This document shows, piece by piece, positions 5,691 to 14,741 of a stretch of DNA of 64,000 nt. The stretch lies in sequence record NC_048046.1; one strand, 5' to 3'. Every line of letters starts with the position of its first letter. Position 1 is the stretch's first letter. Below the pieces are notes generated by a model. The model made no database searches. It saw nothing but the letters and a program-made list of their open reading frames with translations, and was not told the DNA's origin. The position numbers and the translations under genes are program-made.

Positions 5691-6386
5691 TTATTCCGGA
5701 AACTGGTAGACGCGGTCCTTCCAGAAGGGCATCCCCTTCACCTCGACCATGCCCAGGCTCTCGACGAACTTGGAAGCTTCGTTGACCTCGGCGCCGTGCA
5801 TCAGCGCTTCGTTGCCACGCTGTTCCATCAGGATCACCGGCCGGCAGTGCAGGATTGTGTCCTTCGCGCCGAACACGACCGGGCCTTCGAAGCCCTCGGT
5901 GTCGATCTTGATGAAGTCGACATCGCCGTAACCGTACGAGTCGATCGTGCGGACTTCGATGGGATCGGTTACGAACGAATCGTCCCACTTGGGAGCTTCG
6001 CCATCCAGGAGCGCGTGCGAGAGTTGCCCGTGGGAGGGCTTGTATTCGAAACGCAGGGCTCCCGGCTCGCGCCCGATTGCGATTAGGTGGGCGACCAAGT
6101 CCGGGTCCTTGTGCGTGTTCAGCACGAGCGCGCCGTGGATTTCCGGAACCGCTTCGAACGCCTCCACTCGTTCGAAGGTGCGCTTCAGCAGCGTTGCCGT
6201 GATCCCGACGTTGGCGCCGACGTCCAGCGCGCGCCGGCGGCGCTTGCAGATCGCGGAAGCTGCCTTCACCTTCTTCACATCCATGTTGGGCAGCCCGTCG
6301 AGGACATCGATCGCCTGGAACCGAGCAGCATCCACGAGAGGGACGTAGAAACCGTGAGCTTTGGCATAAGCGCTGGAATGGGACAA
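5691..6386 (-). CDS. FkbM-family SAM-dependent methyltransferase
   Basis: ALDVGANVG, FIKIDTEGFE, RPVILMEQ motifs. Confidence 0.88.
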   Translation of the reverse strand: MSHSSAYAKAHGFYVPLVDAARFQAIDVLDGLPNMDVKKVKAASAICKRRRRALDVGANVGITATLLKRTFERVEAFEAVPEIHGALVLNTHKDPDLVAHLIAIGREPGALRFEYKPSHGQLSHALLDGEAPKWDDSFVTDPIEVRTIDSYGYGDVDFIKIDTEGFEGPVVFGAKDTILHCRPVILMEQRGNEALMHGAEVNEASKFVESLGMVEVKGMPFWKDRVYQFPE

Positions 6387-7033: not shown

Positions 7034-7110
7034 CTGCGTATAGCTCAGTCTGGTGGAGTGCCCGTTTCGGTAACGGGAGGCCGTGGGTTCAAATCCTACT
7101 ACGCAGACCA
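7034..7110 (+). tRNA. tRNA-Pro(CGG)
   Basis: ctgcgta/tacgcag, cccgt-ttCGGta-acggg, A73-CCA. Confidence 0.9.
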
Positions 7111-7118
7111 ACTTCAGT

Positions 7119-7193
7119 CAGAGTCTGGCCGAGCGGCTAGGCACCGGTTTTGGGAGCCGGACGAGGCAGGTTCAACTCCTGCGGCTCTGACCA
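7119..7193 (+). tRNA. tRNA-Pro(TGG)
   Basis: cagagtc/ggctctg, ccggt-ttTGGga-gccgg. Confidence 0.9.
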
Positions 7194-7194
7194 T

Positions 7195-7271
7195 CAGTGT
7201 GTGGCGCAGTTTGGTAGCGCGCTTGCTCGGGATGCAAGAGGTCGCAGGTTCAAATCCTGCTACACTGACCA
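7195..7271 (+). tRNA. tRNA-Pro(GGG)
   Basis: cagtgtg/tacactg, cttgc-tcGGGat-gcaag (C33). Confidence 0.88.
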
Positions 7272-7277
7272 GTTTAA

Positions 7278-7350
7278 GCTGTCGCGTGTGGATTCACGCC
7301 GGCCCCTTGGTATGGGGAAGTAGAAGGTTCAATTCCTTCCGGCAGCACCA
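7278..7350 (+). tRNA. tRNA-Thr(GGT), atypical compact D-arm
   Basis: gctgtcg/cggcagc, cccc-ttGGTat-gggg, T-arm gaagg-ttcaatt-ccttc, CCA. Confidence 0.75.
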
Positions 7351-7355
7351 AGTTC

Positions 7356-7425
7356 GCCGATGCTTCAGGGAAGAAGTGTCTTTCGTAGTGACGCCAGGAG
7401 GGTTCGAGTCCTTCCATCGGCACCA
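7356..7425 (+). tRNA. tRNA-Thr(CGT), atypical compact D-arm
   Basis: gccgatg/catcggc, loop ttCGTag, T-arm gaggg-ttcgagt-ccttc, CCA; 70 nt. Confidence 0.7.
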
Positions 7426-7465
7426 GTTTAATTCTTGATCCGAGGAGATCAGATGTAGACAAAAT

Positions 7466-7546
7466 GGATCGTGAGCTTAATTCCGGGTGGCCGGGACCGT
7501 CCTCTTAAGTCGAGAGCAAGTGGTTCGACTCCACCACGATCCTCCA
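7466..7546 (+). tRNA. Atypical or degenerate tRNA-Lys(CTT)-like
   Basis: ggatcgt/acgatcc acceptor, T-loop ttcgact, CCA; ctCTTaa loop, but anticodon and D stems pair poorly. Confidence 0.5.
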
Positions 7547-7552
7547 AAACAT

Positions 7553-7642
7553 GGGTGAGTTCTCCGAGCGGTCGAAGGGGAGTGACTCTTAATCACTTGG
7601 ACGAAAGTCCCACCGTGGGTTCGAATCCCACCTCACCCTCCA
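7553..7642 (+). tRNA. tRNA-Lys(CTT) with a long variable arm
   Basis: gggtgag/ctcaccc, agtga-ctCTTaa-tcact, variable hairpin ggac-gaaa-gtcc, CCA. Confidence 0.85.
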
Positions 7643-7650
7643 AGTTTTAT

Positions 7651-7738
7651 CCCTGCGTGGCGAAGTATGGTAGACGCGCCAGTTTCAGATACTGGTGTCC
7701 GAAAGGGCGGGTAGGTTCGACTCCTATCGCAGGGACCA
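7651..7738 (+). tRNA. tRNA-Leu(CAG)
   Basis: Class II cloverleaf, ccagt-ttCAGat-actgg, A73-CCA. Confidence 0.92.
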
Positions 7739-7748
7739 AATTCCAGAT

Positions 7749-7835
7749 GCCCATCTGGTCGGAATGGTAGACGCAGCGCACTCAAAATGCGTGGGCCGAA
7801 AGGCCGTCCCGGTTCAAGTCCGGGGGTGGGCACCA
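7749..7835 (+). tRNA. tRNA-Leu(CAA)
   Basis: Class II cloverleaf, cgca-ctCAAaa-tgcg. Confidence 0.9.
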
Positions 7836-7843
7836 AAGTTAAT

Positions 7844-7931
7844 CGCAGCGTGGCGAAGTCAGGTAGACGCGCCATCTTGAGAGGGTGGTGTCCGAAAGGG
7901 CGGGTAGGTTCGAATCCTATCGCTGCGACCA
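7844..7931 (+). tRNA. tRNA-Leu(GAG)
   Basis: Class II cloverleaf, ccatc-ttGAGag-ggtgg. Confidence 0.92.
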
Positions 7932-7939
7932 AGTTCTGA

Positions 7940-8014
7940 TCTGGTGTAGTCGAGTGGTTAAGACGCTGCATTGTGGATGCGGAGGCTCTGGTTCAATCCC
8001 AGGCACCAGTACCA
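7940..8014 (+). tRNA. tRNA-His(GTG), A73 and no encoded G-1
   Basis: ctgca-ttGTGga-tgcgg, acceptor ctggtg/caccag, ACCA end. Confidence 0.85.
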
Positions 8015-8018
8015 ATAC

Positions 8019-8093
8019 GGGGATGTAGCTCAGGGGTAGAGCGGCTGTTTTGCAAGCAGCGGGTCGGGGGTTCGAATCCCTCCATCTCCACCA
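8019..8093 (+). tRNA. tRNA-Ala(TGC)
   Basis: G3.U70 pair, gctgt-ttTGCaa-gcagc. Confidence 0.92.
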
Positions 8094-8098
8094 ACTAC

Positions 8099-8169
8099 GG
8101 GGCCAGCGCTGGGCGCAGCCATCCTTTGCAAGGAAGGCGGGCGGGGTTCGATTCCCCGTGACTCCACCA
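8099..8169 (+). tRNA. Atypical tRNA-Ala(TGC), minimal D-arm and extended anticodon stem
   Basis: ggggcca/tgactcc with G3.U70; gcgc-tgg-gcgc D hairpin; gccatcc-ttTGCaa-ggaaggc. Confidence 0.7.
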
Positions 8170-8170
8170 C

Positions 8171-8259
8171 GGATGGTGAATTGATCAGGCGATCAGGGCG
8201 GTTTCGAAAACCGAGCGGACCTTCACGGGTCTGGGGTTCAAGTCCTCCGCCATCCGCCA
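8171..8259 (+). tRNA. tRNA-Ser(CGA), 8/4 fold
   Basis: 8-bp acceptor ggatggtg/cgccatcc, 4-bp T-stem gggg/cctc, ttCGAaa loop, long variable arm, G73. Confidence 0.85.
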
Positions 8260-8263
8260 ACAT

Positions 8264-8353
8264 GGAGAGCGAACCGGACAGCCGCGCCGGGACCGATTGG
8301 AAATCGCGTCGGACCTTCACGGGTCTGGGGATGGTGTCCTCCGCTCTCCGCCA
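8264..8353 (+). tRNA. tRNA-Ser(GGA), 8/4 fold, non-canonical T-loop
   Basis: ggagagcg/cgctctcc, cga-ttGGAaa-tcg, T-loop atggtgt. Confidence 0.8.
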
Positions 8354-8357
8354 ACAT

Positions 8358-8445
8358 GGATGTATGGCTGAGAGGCTGAAAGCGCCCGTCTTGAAAACGG
8401 GTCGACCGAGAGGTCGCGGGAGTTCGAATCTCTCTGCATCCACCA
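8358..8445 (+). tRNA. tRNA-Ser(TGA)
   Basis: Canonical 7/5 class II, cccgt-ctTGAaa-acggg, A73. Confidence 0.88.
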
Positions 8446-8519
8446 ACACATGAGGGTCACGACCTCTCTCGCCTGTCGTGAGAAATTCCGGGAAGGATCG
8501 TCCTGGAGCCCGTGGAATT

Positions 8520-8609
8520 GGAGAGCGAACCGGACAGCCGCGCCGGCGCCGATTGCTAATCGAGTGGAGCCTTCACGGGCCTGGGGATGGTGCCCTCCGC
8601 TCTCCGCCA
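8520..8609 (+). tRNA. tRNA-Ser(GCT), 8/4 fold, non-canonical T-loop
   Basis: Near copy of 8264..8353; cga-ttGCTaa-tcg, T-loop atggtgc. Confidence 0.8.
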
Positions 8610-8638: not shown

Positions 8639-8860
8639 ATGACGACGATGACGCAATGCCGACTGGAACGCAATGGCGCGGTCCAAGTCGCCTGGATCGA
8701 GTCGAAGTTCGCCAAGCCGACGAAGGTCGTCAAGATCAAGGTCGACGGCGAGTGGGAAGACGGATGGGTGGTCGCTAAGACTGGCACGACCCTACCGGCC
8801 AAGACGGTCCAGGACCGCGAGCGGGACTTCAAGTCACACCGCCGCGCCACCGACGTGTAA
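8639..8860 (+). CDS. Hypothetical protein
   Basis: AGGGAG RBS; MTTMTQCRLERNG... Confidence 0.7.
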   Translation: MTTMTQCRLERNGAVQVAWIESKFAKPTKVVKIKVDGEWEDGWVVAKTGTTLPAKTVQDRERDFKSHRRATDV

Positions 8861-8865
8861 AGGGG

Positions 8866-8899
8866 AACGCCCCGGTCTCGCGACCGGGGCGTTCTTTGT
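8866..8899. terminator. Terminator between convergent genes, possibly bidirectional
   Basis: aacgccccggtc-tcgc-gaccggggcgtt followed by ctttgttt. Confidence 0.8.
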
Positions 8900-9438: not shown

Positions 9439-10110
9439 ATGGACAGAAATTCTGGCGACGTTAAACTGTGCGCCATGTCCTATCCGATCGCTCCGACCTC
9501 ATTCGAGTCCAACCATTTCGATCCGGCGTGGGTCGATTTGGATTTCTTCTATTCTCAGAGTGGGATTGGTAGCTTTCCCAAGCATGTATGTAAGCGGACC
9601 TTCCAGGCTTCGCTGCCCTACATCCAGAGCGCTCGACACGCGATCGACATTGGTTGTCGCGACGGCGAATACAGTCGCTACTTGCAGACGAGCTTCGCGC
9701 ACGTCTTCGGCTTCGATCCGCGCCGGCGCGAGTACCTTCCGTTCAACGTCGATCTCAAGCGCATGACGCATTTCCTCTGCGCTCTGGGCGATGAGCCCGG
9801 TACGATCAAGATGTCGGGCGGTACCCACAAGCAGTTCGGTCCTAAGCAGCATGTCGCGCCGTGCTTCACGCTCGACAGCTTCGGCCTTCAGGATATCGAC
9901 TACATTAAGATCGACGTCGAAGGATTCGAGAAGAAGGTACTGATTGGCGGTTGGGCAACGATTGACCGTTGCCGGCCGGTGATCGTCATCGAGCAGAACG
10001 ATGTCACGCTGCCGGGGGCAGCGCGCTACGAAGCGCGAGACTGGCTGGAGCAGCGAGGCTATAGCGTAGCTGCGATCAGCAAGGATGACCTGATCATGGT
10101 TCCGCAGTGA
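9439..10110 (+). CDS. FkbM-family SAM-dependent methyltransferase (alternative start 9475)
   Basis: AIDIGCRDG, YIKIDVEGFE, RPVIVIEQ motifs. Confidence 0.85.
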   Translation: MDRNSGDVKLCAMSYPIAPTSFESNHFDPAWVDLDFFYSQSGIGSFPKHVCKRTFQASLPYIQSARHAIDIGCRDGEYSRYLQTSFAHVFGFDPRRREYLPFNVDLKRMTHFLCALGDEPGTIKMSGGTHKQFGPKQHVAPCFTLDSFGLQDIDYIKIDVEGFEKKVLIGGWATIDRCRPVIVIEQNDVTLPGAARYEARDWLEQRGYSVAAISKDDLIMVPQ

Positions 10111-10650: not shown

Positions 10651-10729
10651 AGGATGGGGAGCGCTTCCCATCGTGGAGTGCCGGGTAGTTAACCCGGAGG
10701 CGGGGGTTCGAGTCCCTCCATCCGTTCCA
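10651..10729 (+). pseudogene. Degenerate tRNA-Asn(GTT)-like
   Basis: Good anticodon arm ccggg-taGTTaa-cccgg and T-arm, terminal CCA, but only a 5-bp acceptor and A33. Confidence 0.5.
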
Positions 10730-10852: not shown

Positions 10853-11614
10853 ATGCGCATCCTGGTCTTGAGCGACCTGCACCTCGAATTCGGCAACATG
10901 GATCGCAACTGGCAGCCGCCCGAGTGCGACGCGGTGATCCTGGCCGGCGACATCGCGACCGGTGTCTTCGGCGTCATGTGGGCACAGACGCTCCCGGCGC
11001 CGGTCTTTTACGTGCCGGGCAACCACGAGTTCTACGGCAAGCGCCGCTACCTCCACCACATGGAGAAGCTGCACGCGAAGGCGGAAGACTCCAATGTCGC
11101 CGTCATGCAGAACCGCATTATCCAGGGCGAGATCGCCGGCGAGAAGGTCCGCATCCTCGGCGCCACGATGTGGACCGACTTTGGCCTGCATGGGACCGAG
11201 CATTTGTCCCAGGTCGCGGCGCAGCGCGAGATGAACGACTACAAGCAGATCAGGCTGGATCACAGCAAGATGCTGACGGCCGACCACACGCGCAGCCTCC
11301 ACCTGGAATCCCGCTACTGGCTCAGCGAGCAGCTTCGACAGCCGTTCGACGGCAAGACGATCGTCATCACCCACCACGCCCCTTCCGAGCAGTCGATTCC
11401 GCAGCGCTATCGCGGCGATCCTCTGTCGCCGGCCTACGCCGCGCGTCTGGAGAACCTGATCTGCAACTACGAGCCTACGCTGTGGGTGCATGGGCATATC
11501 CACGACAGCCTGGACTACCGCATCTGCGAGACGCGTATCGTCTGCAACCCTCGCGGCTACAAGGGCCACGAACTCAACAAGAACTTCAACCCGCATCTGG
11601 TGGTGGAGATTTAA
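10853..11614 (+). CDS. Calcineurin-like metallophosphoesterase
   Basis: SDLH, GD, GNHE, HH, HGHIH motifs. Confidence 0.92.
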   Translation: MRILVLSDLHLEFGNMDRNWQPPECDAVILAGDIATGVFGVMWAQTLPAPVFYVPGNHEFYGKRRYLHHMEKLHAKAEDSNVAVMQNRIIQGEIAGEKVRILGATMWTDFGLHGTEHLSQVAAQREMNDYKQIRLDHSKMLTADHTRSLHLESRYWLSEQLRQPFDGKTIVITHHAPSEQSIPQRYRGDPLSPAYAARLENLICNYEPTLWVHGHIHDSLDYRICETRIVCNPRGYKGHELNKNFNPHLVVEI

Positions 11615-11616
11615 GC

Positions 11617-11952
11617 ATGCCCCGCAAATGGCGCGTATTCGGTGGAGAGGTCTGGCACTTGCATGCGCCCGCACCGGAGCAGCTACCGACGAACAATCAG
11701 TTCGCGAGCATCTTCCGAGATTGCGATAAGGTTGAATTCGCGGGCGATTACGACACCGAGAAGGAAGCGCGGGATGTCTGGAAGGCTCGGGCGCAGCAGA
11801 CCGTCGACAACGCCTTGATGCGCTTCTTCATCGTCCCTTACGATTACGAAGAGATGTCACCGAAGGAGTGGTGGGCTAAACGCGTCGAGTTCCTATCGCA
11901 GAATATGGACGTACCTGCTATCGGCCGCTCGCGTCCGGAGATTATGCGCTAA
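11617..11952 (+). CDS. DUF4170-like protein
   Basis: VFGGE...WKARAQQTVDNALMRFFIV resembles alphaproteobacterial DUF4170. Confidence 0.7.
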   Translation: MPRKWRVFGGEVWHLHAPAPEQLPTNNQFASIFRDCDKVEFAGDYDTEKEARDVWKARAQQTVDNALMRFFIVPYDYEEMSPKEWWAKRVEFLSQNMDVPAIGRSRPEIMR

Positions 11953-12473
11953 TGGCTTACCGCCAGATCATCCCCATCGACGACAAGCTGCTGACCAAGC
12001 CGTCAGCGCCGATCGAACTCATCAACGGCGAGGTTCCGCAGGATATCCTCGATCTCGCTGGCGACATGCTGGAGACCTGCCGCGCTATCAACGGCGCCGG
12101 CCTCGCGGCGGTCCAGGTGGGCGAGCCGGTTCGCATGTTCGTGATGGACCTCGTCCAGATCAACGGCCCGACCATGGTCTTCATCAATCCGGAGATCATC
12201 GTGCGTTCGGGCGAGACGATCGAGATGCTGGAGGGGTGCCTGTCGATGCCGGGCATCGGCTTCACGCTGGAGCGCGCCGCGACTGTCACTGTCCGGTACA
12301 CTGCGATCGACGGCGAAGAGAAGACCTATGACGCCGGCGGATACGCGGCGATCTGCTGCCAGCACGAAATCGACCATCTCGACGGCATTAGGCATATTGA
12401 CCACTTGTCGAAGCTGAAGCGTTCGCGCTACATGTCCAAGTTCAAGAGCATGCTTCAAGCACGCTCTGGTTAA
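11952..12473 (+). CDS. def: Peptide deformylase
   Basis: GAGLAAVQVG, EGCLS, QHEIDHLDG signature motifs. Confidence 0.95.
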   Translation: MAYRQIIPIDDKLLTKPSAPIELINGEVPQDILDLAGDMLETCRAINGAGLAAVQVGEPVRMFVMDLVQINGPTMVFINPEIIVRSGETIEMLEGCLSMPGIGFTLERAATVTVRYTAIDGEEKTYDAGGYAAICCQHEIDHLDGIRHIDHLSKLKRSRYMSKFKSMLQARSG

Positions 12474-14053: not shown

Positions 14054-14128
14054 CCCTACGTAGCTGAGACAGAGTAGCGCCAGAGTGAAATCCTGGAGAC
14101 GGAGGTGCGAGCACTCTCGTGGGGGCCA
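14054..14128 (+). tRNA. tRNA-Phe(GAA), atypical T-loop
   Basis: ccctacg/cgtgggg, loop gtGAAat, T-loop tgcgagc. Confidence 0.7.
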
Positions 14129-14652: not shown

Positions 14653-14741
14653 TCTCATGTGGCGGAACTGGTAAACGCACCGGACTGTTAATCCGGCGTC
14701 TCGCAAGAGACTTGGGGGTTCGAAGCCCTCCGTGAGAGCCA
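14653..14741 (+). tRNA. tRNA-Asn(GTT) with a long variable arm
   Basis: tctcatg/cgtgaga, ccgga-ctGTTaa-tccgg, variable hairpin gtctc-gcaa-gagac, G73. Confidence 0.88.

Follow-up and report, generated by a model that had tools for sequence, protein, structure and literature searches.

Can a serine tRNA gene that appears to have lost the canonical T54-Ψ55-C56 motif of its T-loop still encode a working tRNA, and if so, what would the changed loop mean? The question is raised by a tRNA array on the + strand of a 64,000-nt stretch of DNA (sequence record NC_048046.1; hereafter, “the window”), which matches Caulobacter phage CcrPW (MH588545.1, 308 kb, genus Colossusvirus) at 100% identity; window positions equal record positions minus 62000. 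At the 3′ end of the array (7034–8609) are three serine tRNA genes, Ser(CGA), Ser(GGA), and Ser(GCU), that pair best with an 8-bp acceptor stem and a 4-bp T stem (“8/4”). Two of them, the GGA and GCU copies, have T-loops that read AUGGUG(U/C). Here, we describe the structure, relatives, and history of the three genes. The most probable reading, to which we assign a probability of roughly 0.78, is that they are serine isoacceptor tRNAs of the phage-borne (8/4) tRNA-Ser (allo-tRNA-type) class, and that the unusual T-loops reflect a compensatory flip of the base pair that closes the tRNA elbow.

Three serine tRNA genes in a phage tRNA array

The array encodes, in order, three tRNAs for proline, one for lysine, three for leucine, one for histidine, two for alanine, and then Ser(CGA), Ser(GGA), Ser(UGA), and Ser(GCU). 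Intergenic spacers are ~1–10 nt, with the motif ACAT preceding the GGA copy and Ser(UGA), and all tRNAs called in the window have an encoded CCA. A preliminary description of this DNA had assigned the interval 8171–8609 to three 8/4 serine tRNA genes. The three genes are indeed found at those places, and the same interval also holds a canonical 7/5 tRNA-Ser(UGA) (8358–8445).

The first gene, tRNA-Ser(CGA) (8171–8259, +), is called by ARAGORN, and its arms were assigned with a structural parser. Its acceptor stem pairs 8171–8178 with 8248–8255, its anticodon is at 8205–8207, and its T-loop is the canonical TTCAAGT; the D arm is able to form 6 bp with an AGGC tetraloop. The second gene, tRNA-Ser(GGA) (8264–8353, +), located with the parser, has the D-loop ACAGCCGCG at 8278–8286 (G18 at 8281, C19 at 8282), its anticodon at 8299–8301, and the T-loop ATGGTGT at 8331–8337 (A54, U55, G56 at 8333, G57, and U58). 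The third, tRNA-Ser(GCU) (8520–8609, +), also located with the parser, has the D-loop ACAGCCGCG at 8534–8542 (C19 at 8538), its anticodon at 8555–8557, and the T-loop ATGGTGC at 8587–8593 (G56 at 8589). The D stem is secure over 4 bp in the GGA and GCU copies, which have a 9-nt D-loop with only imperfect extension; position 20 is C in all three genes.

All three genes have G73 followed by the encoded CCA, an AA linker after the acceptor stem, an 18-nt variable region with a 4–6 bp stem, and their CGA, GGA, or GCT anticodon in a 7-nt loop with U33. Eight acceptor pairs precede G73 (one of them G•U in the CGA copy), and the T stems are GGGG/CCTC. Pairing in the 7/5 register places U49 opposite C65 in each gene, a mismatch that the 8/4 register replaces with a G8-C pair. 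The GGA and GCU copies, described earlier as near-identical, agree at 80 of 90 positions; they differ only at nt 26–27, nt 42, and nt 60, in the anticodon, and in the variable arm.

The 8/4 register and its gene family

The minimum free energy (MFE) fold of Ser(CGA) is an 8/4 cloverleaf. However, folding of single sequences does not discriminate well in this setting, the canonical Ser(UGA) itself having a z-score of only −1.6. We therefore relied on covariation among relatives instead.

BLAST searches of phage genomes revealed unannotated homologues in a range of phages. Among Caulobacter phages, CcrColossus (“Colossus” below) has all three genes; CcrBL10, CcrRogue, BL57, and several RBC/BL isolates carry CGA, GGA, and GCU in tandem; and phiCbK-type phages carry GCU alone. 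Homologues were also found in phages of Ruegeria, Phaeobacter, and Rhodobacter (DSS3_MAL1, RpAliso, MD18, and RcXuper), in Mesorhizobium phage Cp1R7A-A1, in Brevundimonas phage Bajun, and in Stenotrophomonas phage DLP_6. A pattern scan of IMG/VR for the family T arm plus GCCA tail identified more than 120 contigs among the matches listed. In total, 150 unique family genes were extracted with the structural parser. All of them have a GCCA tail and a serine anticodon (GCT, CGA, GGA, or TGA) in a standard 7-nt loop with U33, and positions 8–9 are AA in nearly all. A covariance model, R1, built from 64 diverse relatives with CcrPW and Colossus excluded, scores the CGA, GGA, and GCU genes at 82.8, 79.8, and 76.0 bits, respectively (E ~1e-19 to 1e-17), with no other tRNA of the window above 26 bits; the R1 search gave 204 matches at E ≤ 1e-9.

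The two registers make different predictions for the base immediately 3′ of the T stem. In the 64 sequences of the model, this base pairs with position 8 without exception (GC 31, UA 18, AU 10, CG 5), whereas the 7/5 alternative, 49:65, is paired in only 22 of 64, with no double changes and an almost invariant U at position 49. Among 146 distinct sequences aligned to the model, the eighth acceptor pair is GC in 66, UA in 42, AU in 23, and CG in 15, and unpaired in none. The same pair changes from G-C in the CcrPW GCU gene to A-U in that of Colossus. Family covariation is decisive for the 8/4 fold, as had been proposed from the pairing of the three genes.

An extended, bulged anticodon stem

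If a standard 5-bp anticodon stem is assumed, the GGA and GCU copies each have two apparent mismatches. The family resolves them. Positions 26 and 45 are paired in 143 of the 150 genes (GC 63, CG 51, AU 23) and positions 27 and 44 in 109, while the standard 27:43 pair is formed in only 53. The true anticodon stem is 6 bp long with one bulged base, and position 26 is paired; the mismatches disappear because the family stem is extended and bulged. In the CcrPW GGA and GCU genes, the stem consists of 3 + 3 bp with nt 42 bulged, and ViennaRNA gives this bulged 6-bp stem under constraints that fix the three anticodon-stem pairs nearest the loop together with the acceptor, D, and T stems. Across the Caulobacter-phage genes, 27:44 is A-U, U-A, G-C, or G•U, and 26:45 is G-C or C-G; pairs of the variable stem also covary across the family. 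A paired position 26 with a bulge, as a family-wide feature, seems to be new, in that we did not find it described in the literature searched. It adds structural detail to the 8/4 family.

Inversion of the elbow pair

The T-loops AUGGUG(U/C) had been taken to mean that the T54-Ψ55-C56 motif was lost. The loops do read this way, but the loss is only partial: U55 is kept, A54 is the norm for the family, and the change of C56 to G56 is matched by a change of G19 to C19 in the D-loop.

Departure from T54 is widespread in the family, with A54 in 122 of 150 genes; the states of positions 54 and 58 are A:A in 93, A:U in 29, and U:A in 24. The commonest T-loops are ATCGAGA and ATCAAGA. Eleven genes have ATCGTGC, from which the CcrPW loop ATGGTGC differs only by C56→G56. 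The CGA gene, too, varies at these positions, with T54…A58 in CcrPW and A54…T58 in Colossus.

The G56 change is tightly associated with position 19. All ten G56 genes have a pyrimidine after G18 (C19 in nine, U19 in one), compared with 3 of 140 C56 genes (naive Fisher p = 2.4e-13); in these three, the GG pair is displaced. The G56 genes were collected without reference to the D-loop. They comprise the GGA and GCU copies of CcrPW and of Colossus, the GCU gene of BL57, and genes from three metagenome contigs: two from L372, a 1.9-kb contig with a phiCbK-like array order, two from L314, and one from L317. They fall into at least three sequence-distinct groups. On the covariance model alignment, 19:56 is GC in 85 sequences, CG in 6, and a non-pair in one. 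U55 and purine 57 are kept in the G56 genes. Since a pyrimidine at position 19 accompanies every G56 while U55 and purine 57 are kept, the elbow appears to be preserved with an inverted 19:56 pair, and the strange T-loops of the GGA and GCU copies are accounted for by a swap of G19:C56 to C19:G56. As judged from these comparisons, the elbow is predicted to stay closed in both copies with the opposite polarity, i.e., C19:G56 together with A54/U58. The U19•G56 state found in L314 looks like a wobble intermediate between the two polarities.

Searches with patterns specific to the variant arms returned few further examples. The exact variant D-arm pattern had 25 matches in IMG/VR, real only in the CcrPW and Colossus records, and a T-arm pattern without the 3′ tail had more than 119 matches, none of which parsed as tRNA beyond those two phages. 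In metagenome contigs, the G56 pattern identified the three real contigs named above (L314, L317, and L372) and otherwise mostly chance matches. In bacterial genome contigs, no tRNA was found with the G56 pattern among the matches listed, which does not imply absence from bacteria.

A natural, compensated inversion of the elbow pair seems to be new: we found none described in the literature searched, which for the key paper on 8/4 tRNAs covers its body text. Since the inversion of the near-universal G19:C56 pair is natural and recurrent, it would serve as in-genome evidence that bacterial elbow readers, including seryl-tRNA synthetase (SerRS), accept either polarity. The changes may also affect modification. 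A54 precludes 5-methyluridine (m5U) at position 54, and the pseudouridine (Ψ) synthase TruB is reported to depend on C56; the G56 copies may therefore be without Ψ55.

A second tertiary variant was observed elsewhere in the family. T-loops with G55 (TGCAAGY, AGCATGT, and CGCAAGA) occur together with A18 in five of five genes (from L187, L210, L250, L281, and L209); A18 also occurs with U55 in nine genes, and an A18:G55 alternative to G18:U55 is only suggestive. The set of natural variants (A54:A58, A54:U58, A18:G55, and C19:G56) could be used in studies of T-loop recognition.

Likeness to known tRNAs

The precedent for 8/4 tRNAs had been cited only in general terms; it is real and more specific than that. 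In the text of their 2017 paper in Nucleic Acids Research, Mukai et al. report (8/4) tRNA-Ser in the tRNA clusters of alpha-proteobacterial phages (PMC5389517). Since the fold has already been described for such phages, the 8/4 shape itself is not new, and the CcrPW genes are unannotated new members of the known (8/4) tRNA-Ser class. They share with it the 8 + 4 branch, the location in a phage tRNA cluster, an alpha-proteobacterial host, a nearby tRNA-His that fits 8/4, a long variable arm with G73 (the SerRS identity set of the class, in which U73 may replace G73), serine anticodons, and an anticodon stem longer than 5 bp. The class also has a tRNA-Sec-like D arm (long stem, tetraloop, and Y20), which the CGA copy resembles in its 6 bp plus tetraloop. 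The body text of Mukai et al. describes no T-loop or D-loop variants and does not mention the Caulobacter phages named here (PMC5389517). Measured against that text, the C19:G56 inversion with A54/U58, present in two of the three CcrPW genes, appears to be new.

The tRNA-His(GUG) of the array (7940–8014) is equally compatible with 8/4 and 7/5 folds; in the 8/4 fold, the eighth pair is U•G and the T stem CTGG/CCAG. It has a U1•U72 mismatch, no G−1, and A73, and it resembles the (8/4) tRNA-His that the text of Mukai et al. reports beside (8/4) tRNA-Ser in alpha-proteobacterial phages (PMC5389517).

Bacterial tRNA-Sec (RF01852) is also similar, with an extended acceptor stem, a 6-bp anticodon stem, and a long variable arm, and the CGA copy shares its 6-bp D stem and tetraloop. 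Bacterial tRNA-Sec is itself charged by SerRS, a likeness that would extend to the CcrPW genes if they are charged as proposed below. The branch of tRNA-Sec, however, is 8/5 (13 bp) and its anticodon UCA, whereas the CcrPW genes are 8/4 (12 bp) with anticodons for serine sense codons. None of the three genes combines a tRNA-Sec score of at least 47 bits with a 13-bp branch and UCA. Nor does any of them combine a score of at least 29 bits against RF00005 with a 7/5 branch and T54-Ψ55-C56-R57-A58, as a canonical tRNA would.

Within the same array, the canonical class II tRNA-Ser(UGA) (8358–8445, +), called by ARAGORN and scoring 56.8 bits with the Rfam tRNA model, lies between the GGA and GCU copies. 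It shares with them a long variable arm and a serine anticodon, but its branch is 7/5, position 8 is U, the D arm has a stem of 3–4 bp and a large loop, nt 26 is unpaired, and the T-loop reads TTCGAAT. It scores 26 bits with R1, which puts it outside the 8/4 family. At position 73, it has A in CcrPW, whereas the Colossus orthologue has G, the discriminator normally found in serine tRNAs; combined with a long variable arm, A73 is reminiscent of leucine tRNAs.

For the inverted 19:56 Watson-Crick pair, there is an engineered counterpart in another serine tRNA, mammalian mitochondrial tRNA-Ser(UGA), where C19:G56 restores the serylation lost in a G19C mutant; serylation of that tRNA depends on the integrity of the elbow and not on the identity of the pair (PMC10412605). 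That case is a laboratory mutant of an organellar tRNA acting with the mitochondrial SerRS, while the inversion in CcrPW is natural, recurrent, and found in phage tRNAs of bacterial type.

The commonest loop of the 8/4 family, AUCGAGA, has a further parallel. Eukaryotic initiator tRNAs have T-loops of the AUCGAAA type, with A54 and A60, and the family loop shares A54, A58, and A60 with them. This likeness is a lead and not evidence of homology, as the family consists of bacterial elongator serine tRNAs, and the CcrPW GGA and GCU genes have U58 and G56.

Detection by standard annotation tools

It had been suggested that standard annotation could miss these genes, and it does. None of the three is annotated in the GenBank records of CcrPW (MH588545.1) or Colossus. 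In CcrPW, ARAGORN calls the CGA copy, drawn as a 7/5 tRNA, and leaves the GGA and GCU copies uncalled. With the Rfam tRNA model (RF00005, gathering threshold 29 bits), none of the three genes reaches the threshold, and the GGA and GCU copies have no match in the tRNA clan even at E ≤ 10. The CGA copy gives an end-to-end alignment with the tRNA-Sec model (RF01852) under permissive settings, scoring 40.5 bits, below the gathering score of 47. Across the sampled family, ARAGORN recovers 23 of 150 members (~15%) and none of the ten G56 variants.

The consequences extend to published repertoires. The genome paper on phiCbK states that Rogue has no serine tRNAs (PMC3556154). However, CcrRogue (JX100814.1; L010 in our set) has three tandem 8/4 serine genes, CGA, GGA, and GCU, at 1350–1436, 1444–1530, and 1538–1625 of its record, which tRNAscan-SE 1.21 and Rfam missed. 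The reported absence is therefore an annotation artefact. Such serine tRNAs are lacking from the records of CcrPW, Colossus, CcrBL10, Rogue, BL57, phiCbK, and several Ruegeria, Rhodobacter, Phaeobacter, Mesorhizobium, Brevundimonas, and Stenotrophomonas phages, and studies of phage tRNA repertoires and codon usage undercount the 8/4 serine class.

Constraint and history of the paralogues

Comparison of CcrPW with Colossus shows how the three genes have changed. Over the array as a whole, identity is ~92%; the GGA copy is 99% identical, with one base differing (G-C to G•U). The CGA and GCU genes differ at a further 11 stem pairs. Of these 12 stem-pair differences, none breaks pairing and six are double changes. 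In the GCU gene, compensatory changes are found at acceptor pairs 6 and 8, at D-stem pair 1, and at one pair of the variable stem.

The preliminary description proposed that the GGA and GCU copies arose by duplication with anticodon switching between the two serine codon boxes. This proposal is partly supported: the two genes have clearly exchanged sequence in patches. In CcrPW, the GCU gene has its acceptor and D arm in common with GGA, whereas in Colossus it has the anticodon stem and variable arm in common with GGA and an acceptor and D arm of its own. CcrBL10 has one variable arm common to all three serine genes, and L372 has another that is common to GGA and GCU. However, distinct GGA and GCU genes with isoacceptor-specific anticodon arms are found in CcrBL10, Rogue, BL57, L372, and Colossus, and the GGA/GCU split is therefore old. 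Recurrent, patchy gene conversion among old tandem paralogues fits the sequences at least as well as recent duplication.

Proposed function and alternative explanations

The codon usage of the phage is compatible with a decoding role. In 43 open reading frames (ORFs) of the window with high G+C content at third codon positions (high-GC3), 42.6% of serine codons are TCG, 21.0% TCC, and 21.1% AGC, together 85%. The three 8/4 genes are the only CGA, GGA, and GCU isoacceptors found in the window, while Ser(UGA) matches the rare TCA codon. Most likely, the 8/4 genes decode UCG, UCC, and AGC. We propose that they are transcribed with the rest of the array and excised by host tRNA-processing enzymes. 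The host SerRS would then charge the three tRNAs, recognizing G73 and the long variable arm and not bases in the anticodon or T-loop, and the charged tRNAs would read UCG, UCC/UCU, and AGC/AGU, the main serine codons of the phage. The text of Mukai et al. reports that 8/4 and 9/3 allo-tRNAs are active in E. coli translation, and that SerRS accepts both (PMC5389517). The elbow flip would most simply be a tolerated compensatory change, probably reached via a U19•G56 wobble and passed by gene conversion from one of the tandem paralogues (GGA and GCU) to the other, with the probable loss of m5U54, and perhaps of Ψ55, as a side effect.

Several observations weigh against this proposal. The unconstrained MFE structures of the GGA and GCU copies are not cloverleaves and lie 4–6 kcal/mol below the cloverleaf, although a non-cloverleaf MFE structure is common among GC-rich tRNAs; the z-scores of their folds are weak (−1.9 and −0.04, respectively). 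The ten G56 examples are few, partly related, and not independent, seven of them coming from one Caulobacter phage group. The family was gathered by T-arm patterns and with a parser that needs at least 6 of 8 acceptor pairs, giving a slight bias toward pairing; the collection is a lower bound (at least 150 genes), as are the frequencies drawn from it, and the fixed T stems of the T-arm patterns mean that the diversity of the family is under-sampled. Lastly, an RNA sequencing paper on phiCbK infection makes no mention of tRNA.

The alternative that survives best concerns the elbow. The preliminary description suggested that losing the T-loop motif may evade toxins that recognize it. In a form adjusted to the closed elbow, this would be adaptive stealth: the A54/G56/U58 T-loop with C19 would have been selected to escape a T-loop or elbow reader of the host or of a rival phage, with the L-shape kept. 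The reader could be a tRNA-cleaving or tRNA-modifying defense effector, or a T-loop modification enzyme. Phage tRNAs are known to evade tRNA-targeting defenses, with cases involving anticodon-loop changes and the PARIS and retron systems described in three reports (PMC10264068, PMC11555353, PMC11464382). The recurrence of the G56/C19 state in at least three lineages, and A54 in place of T54 in 122 of the 150 family genes, are also as this explanation would predict. On the other hand, only the GGA and GCU copies are changed. TTCRANN is kept by the 25 tRNAs of the window that ARAGORN calls, Ser(CGA) and Ser(UGA) among them, so that a general threat directed at the T-loop would not be countered. 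T-loop types are mixed within a single phage, BL57 having ATCGAGA, TTCGAGT, and ATGGTGT, and the U19•G56 state of L314 is what neutral compensatory drift would be expected to produce. Moreover, G56 is compensated by C19 with U55 and purine 57 in place, meaning that the elbow is preserved and not lost. A literature search found no effector specific for the T-loop of tRNA-Ser, and a paper on bacterial Schlafen proteins describes cleavage in the anticodon arm and nothing specific for serine tRNAs or the T-loop. We know of no effector with such specificity. Toxin evasion is poorly supported, and the sequence pattern argues against its general version. To a specific version we assign a low probability, given that evasion by phage tRNAs is established for other defenses.

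A broader form of the stealth explanation, which we likewise consider unlikely, holds that the inverted elbow was selected because it is usable by SerRS, EF-Tu, and the ribosome and invisible to a reader of T-loop or elbow bases, the whole A54-bearing 8/4 family being a structurally orthogonal set for decoding serine codons. If so, this set would be maintained because host serine tRNAs are attacked or depleted during infection, and the candidate readers would be a defense nuclease or transferase, or the enzymes that form m5U54 or Ψ55. A tolerated compensatory change remains our preferred explanation of the elbow flip.

Two further alternatives are much less probable again. The first is that the GGA and GCU copies are decaying pseudogenes whose T-loops have drifted from the consensus and that are no longer used. 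Rejection of both copies by standard tRNA finders, the two mismatches under a 5-bp anticodon stem, and the non-cloverleaf MFE folds would all be expected of pseudogenes. However, all stems are intact once the extended, bulged anticodon stem of the family is taken into account, and G73 and CCA are kept. Between CcrPW and Colossus, identity is 99% for the GGA copy and 92% for the array, pairing is kept at every stem difference in the GCU gene, and C56→G56 is compensated in the D-loop in every case. The two copies are also the only isoacceptors of the window for UCC and AGC, which make up 42% of serine codons. None of the three genes has the disrupted stems, lost 3′ features, or pairing-blind substitutions of a pseudogene. 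The second alternative, which we rate as equally improbable, is that the genes encode tRNA-like RNAs with a role other than translation; they might, for instance, titrate a tRNA-binding protein as a decoy or sponge, or serve as processing punctuation in the polycistronic transcript. There is a precedent in the text of Mukai et al., where some allo-tRNAs (the UAU group) are translation-inactive and adjoin toxin-antitoxin genes (PMC5389517). Against this, the anticodon loop of all 150 family members is of the standard 7-nt type with U33 and bears one of four serine anticodons, which is hard to explain without decoding, and phages carry complementary sets (CGA, GGA, and GCU, with or without UGA) that cover the serine codon boxes.

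Finally, we give next to no credence to the possibility that the genes are ordinary 7/5 tRNAs with a tolerated U49•C65 mismatch and the 8/4 reading an artefact, since, although ARAGORN draws the CGA copy as 7/5 and position 49 could pair with the contested 3′ base in about a third of relatives, that base shows perfect covariation with position 8 (four Watson-Crick types, without a mismatch in 146 sequences), including the G-C to A-U switch in the Colossus GCU gene.

Other features of the array and its surroundings

Between Ser(UGA) and Ser(GCU) is a 74-nt spacer (8446–8519, +) that alignment shows to be conserved in Colossus. It has no family match with Rfam or R1. It can be folded into a three-hairpin, cloverleaf-like shape, yet no better than shuffled sequence (z = −0.3). 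The spacer is possibly a decayed tRNA relic. Downstream of the array, GenBank annotates a small ORF, gp106 (8639–8860, +), which is followed by a terminator-like hairpin (8875–8890, +) found in a terminator scan; Colossus has an annotated terminator at the matching place. The transcription unit to which the array belongs likely has its 3′ end at gp106 and the hairpin (8639–8890).

Other tRNAs of the window also have unusual features. The second tRNA-Ala(UGC) (8099–8169) spans just 71 nt; its D-loop is very small, its acceptor stem has an internal C•A mismatch, and its top Rfam model is mascRNA/menRNA (28.8 bits) and not tRNA. Variable arms of the class II type, forming a stem-loop, are found in tRNA-Trp(CCA) (2854–2939), tRNA-Lys(CUU) (7553–7642), and tRNA-Asn(GUU) (14653–14741), which are 86–90 nt long, whereas tRNAs for these three amino acids are normally class I; tRNA-Lys(CUU) also has the discriminator U73. 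The annotations of phiCbK, Rogue, and CcrBL10 include Lys and Asn tRNAs that are similarly long. In Mesorhizobium phage Cp1R7A-A1, an Asn tRNA is long and a Lys tRNA covers 88 nt in the record, and Rhodobacter phage RcXuper has a long Lys tRNA.

Several weak tRNA-like stretches are unannotated. The first (7278–7347) scores 26.9 bits with the Rfam tRNA model and has GGU (Thr) in its anticodon loop; CcrBL10 has a tRNA-Thr(GGT) at the matching place in its array. For the second (7356–7422; 21.4 bits), the homologue in Colossus carries a tRNA pseudogene annotation. Two more are at 7466–7543 (19.6 bits with R1) and 10652–10724 (22.6 bits with Rfam, 22.3 with R1). A tRNA-like stretch at 14054–14125 scores 30.2 bits with Rfam, above the gathering score, and is called by neither ARAGORN nor GenBank.

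Among neighboring ORFs, a Pfam scan identified two FkbM-type methyltransferases, a metallophosphoesterase, DUF4170, and a Kdo-hydroxylase-like domain, and nothing clearly directed at tRNA. The two FkbM-family methyltransferase genes flank the array, at 5691–6386 (−) and 9475–10110 (+) (Pfam PF05050; E = 9e-13 and 1e-14, respectively). A calcineurin-like phosphoesterase gene (10853–11614) and a peptide deformylase gene (11952–12473) lie between this array and the next.

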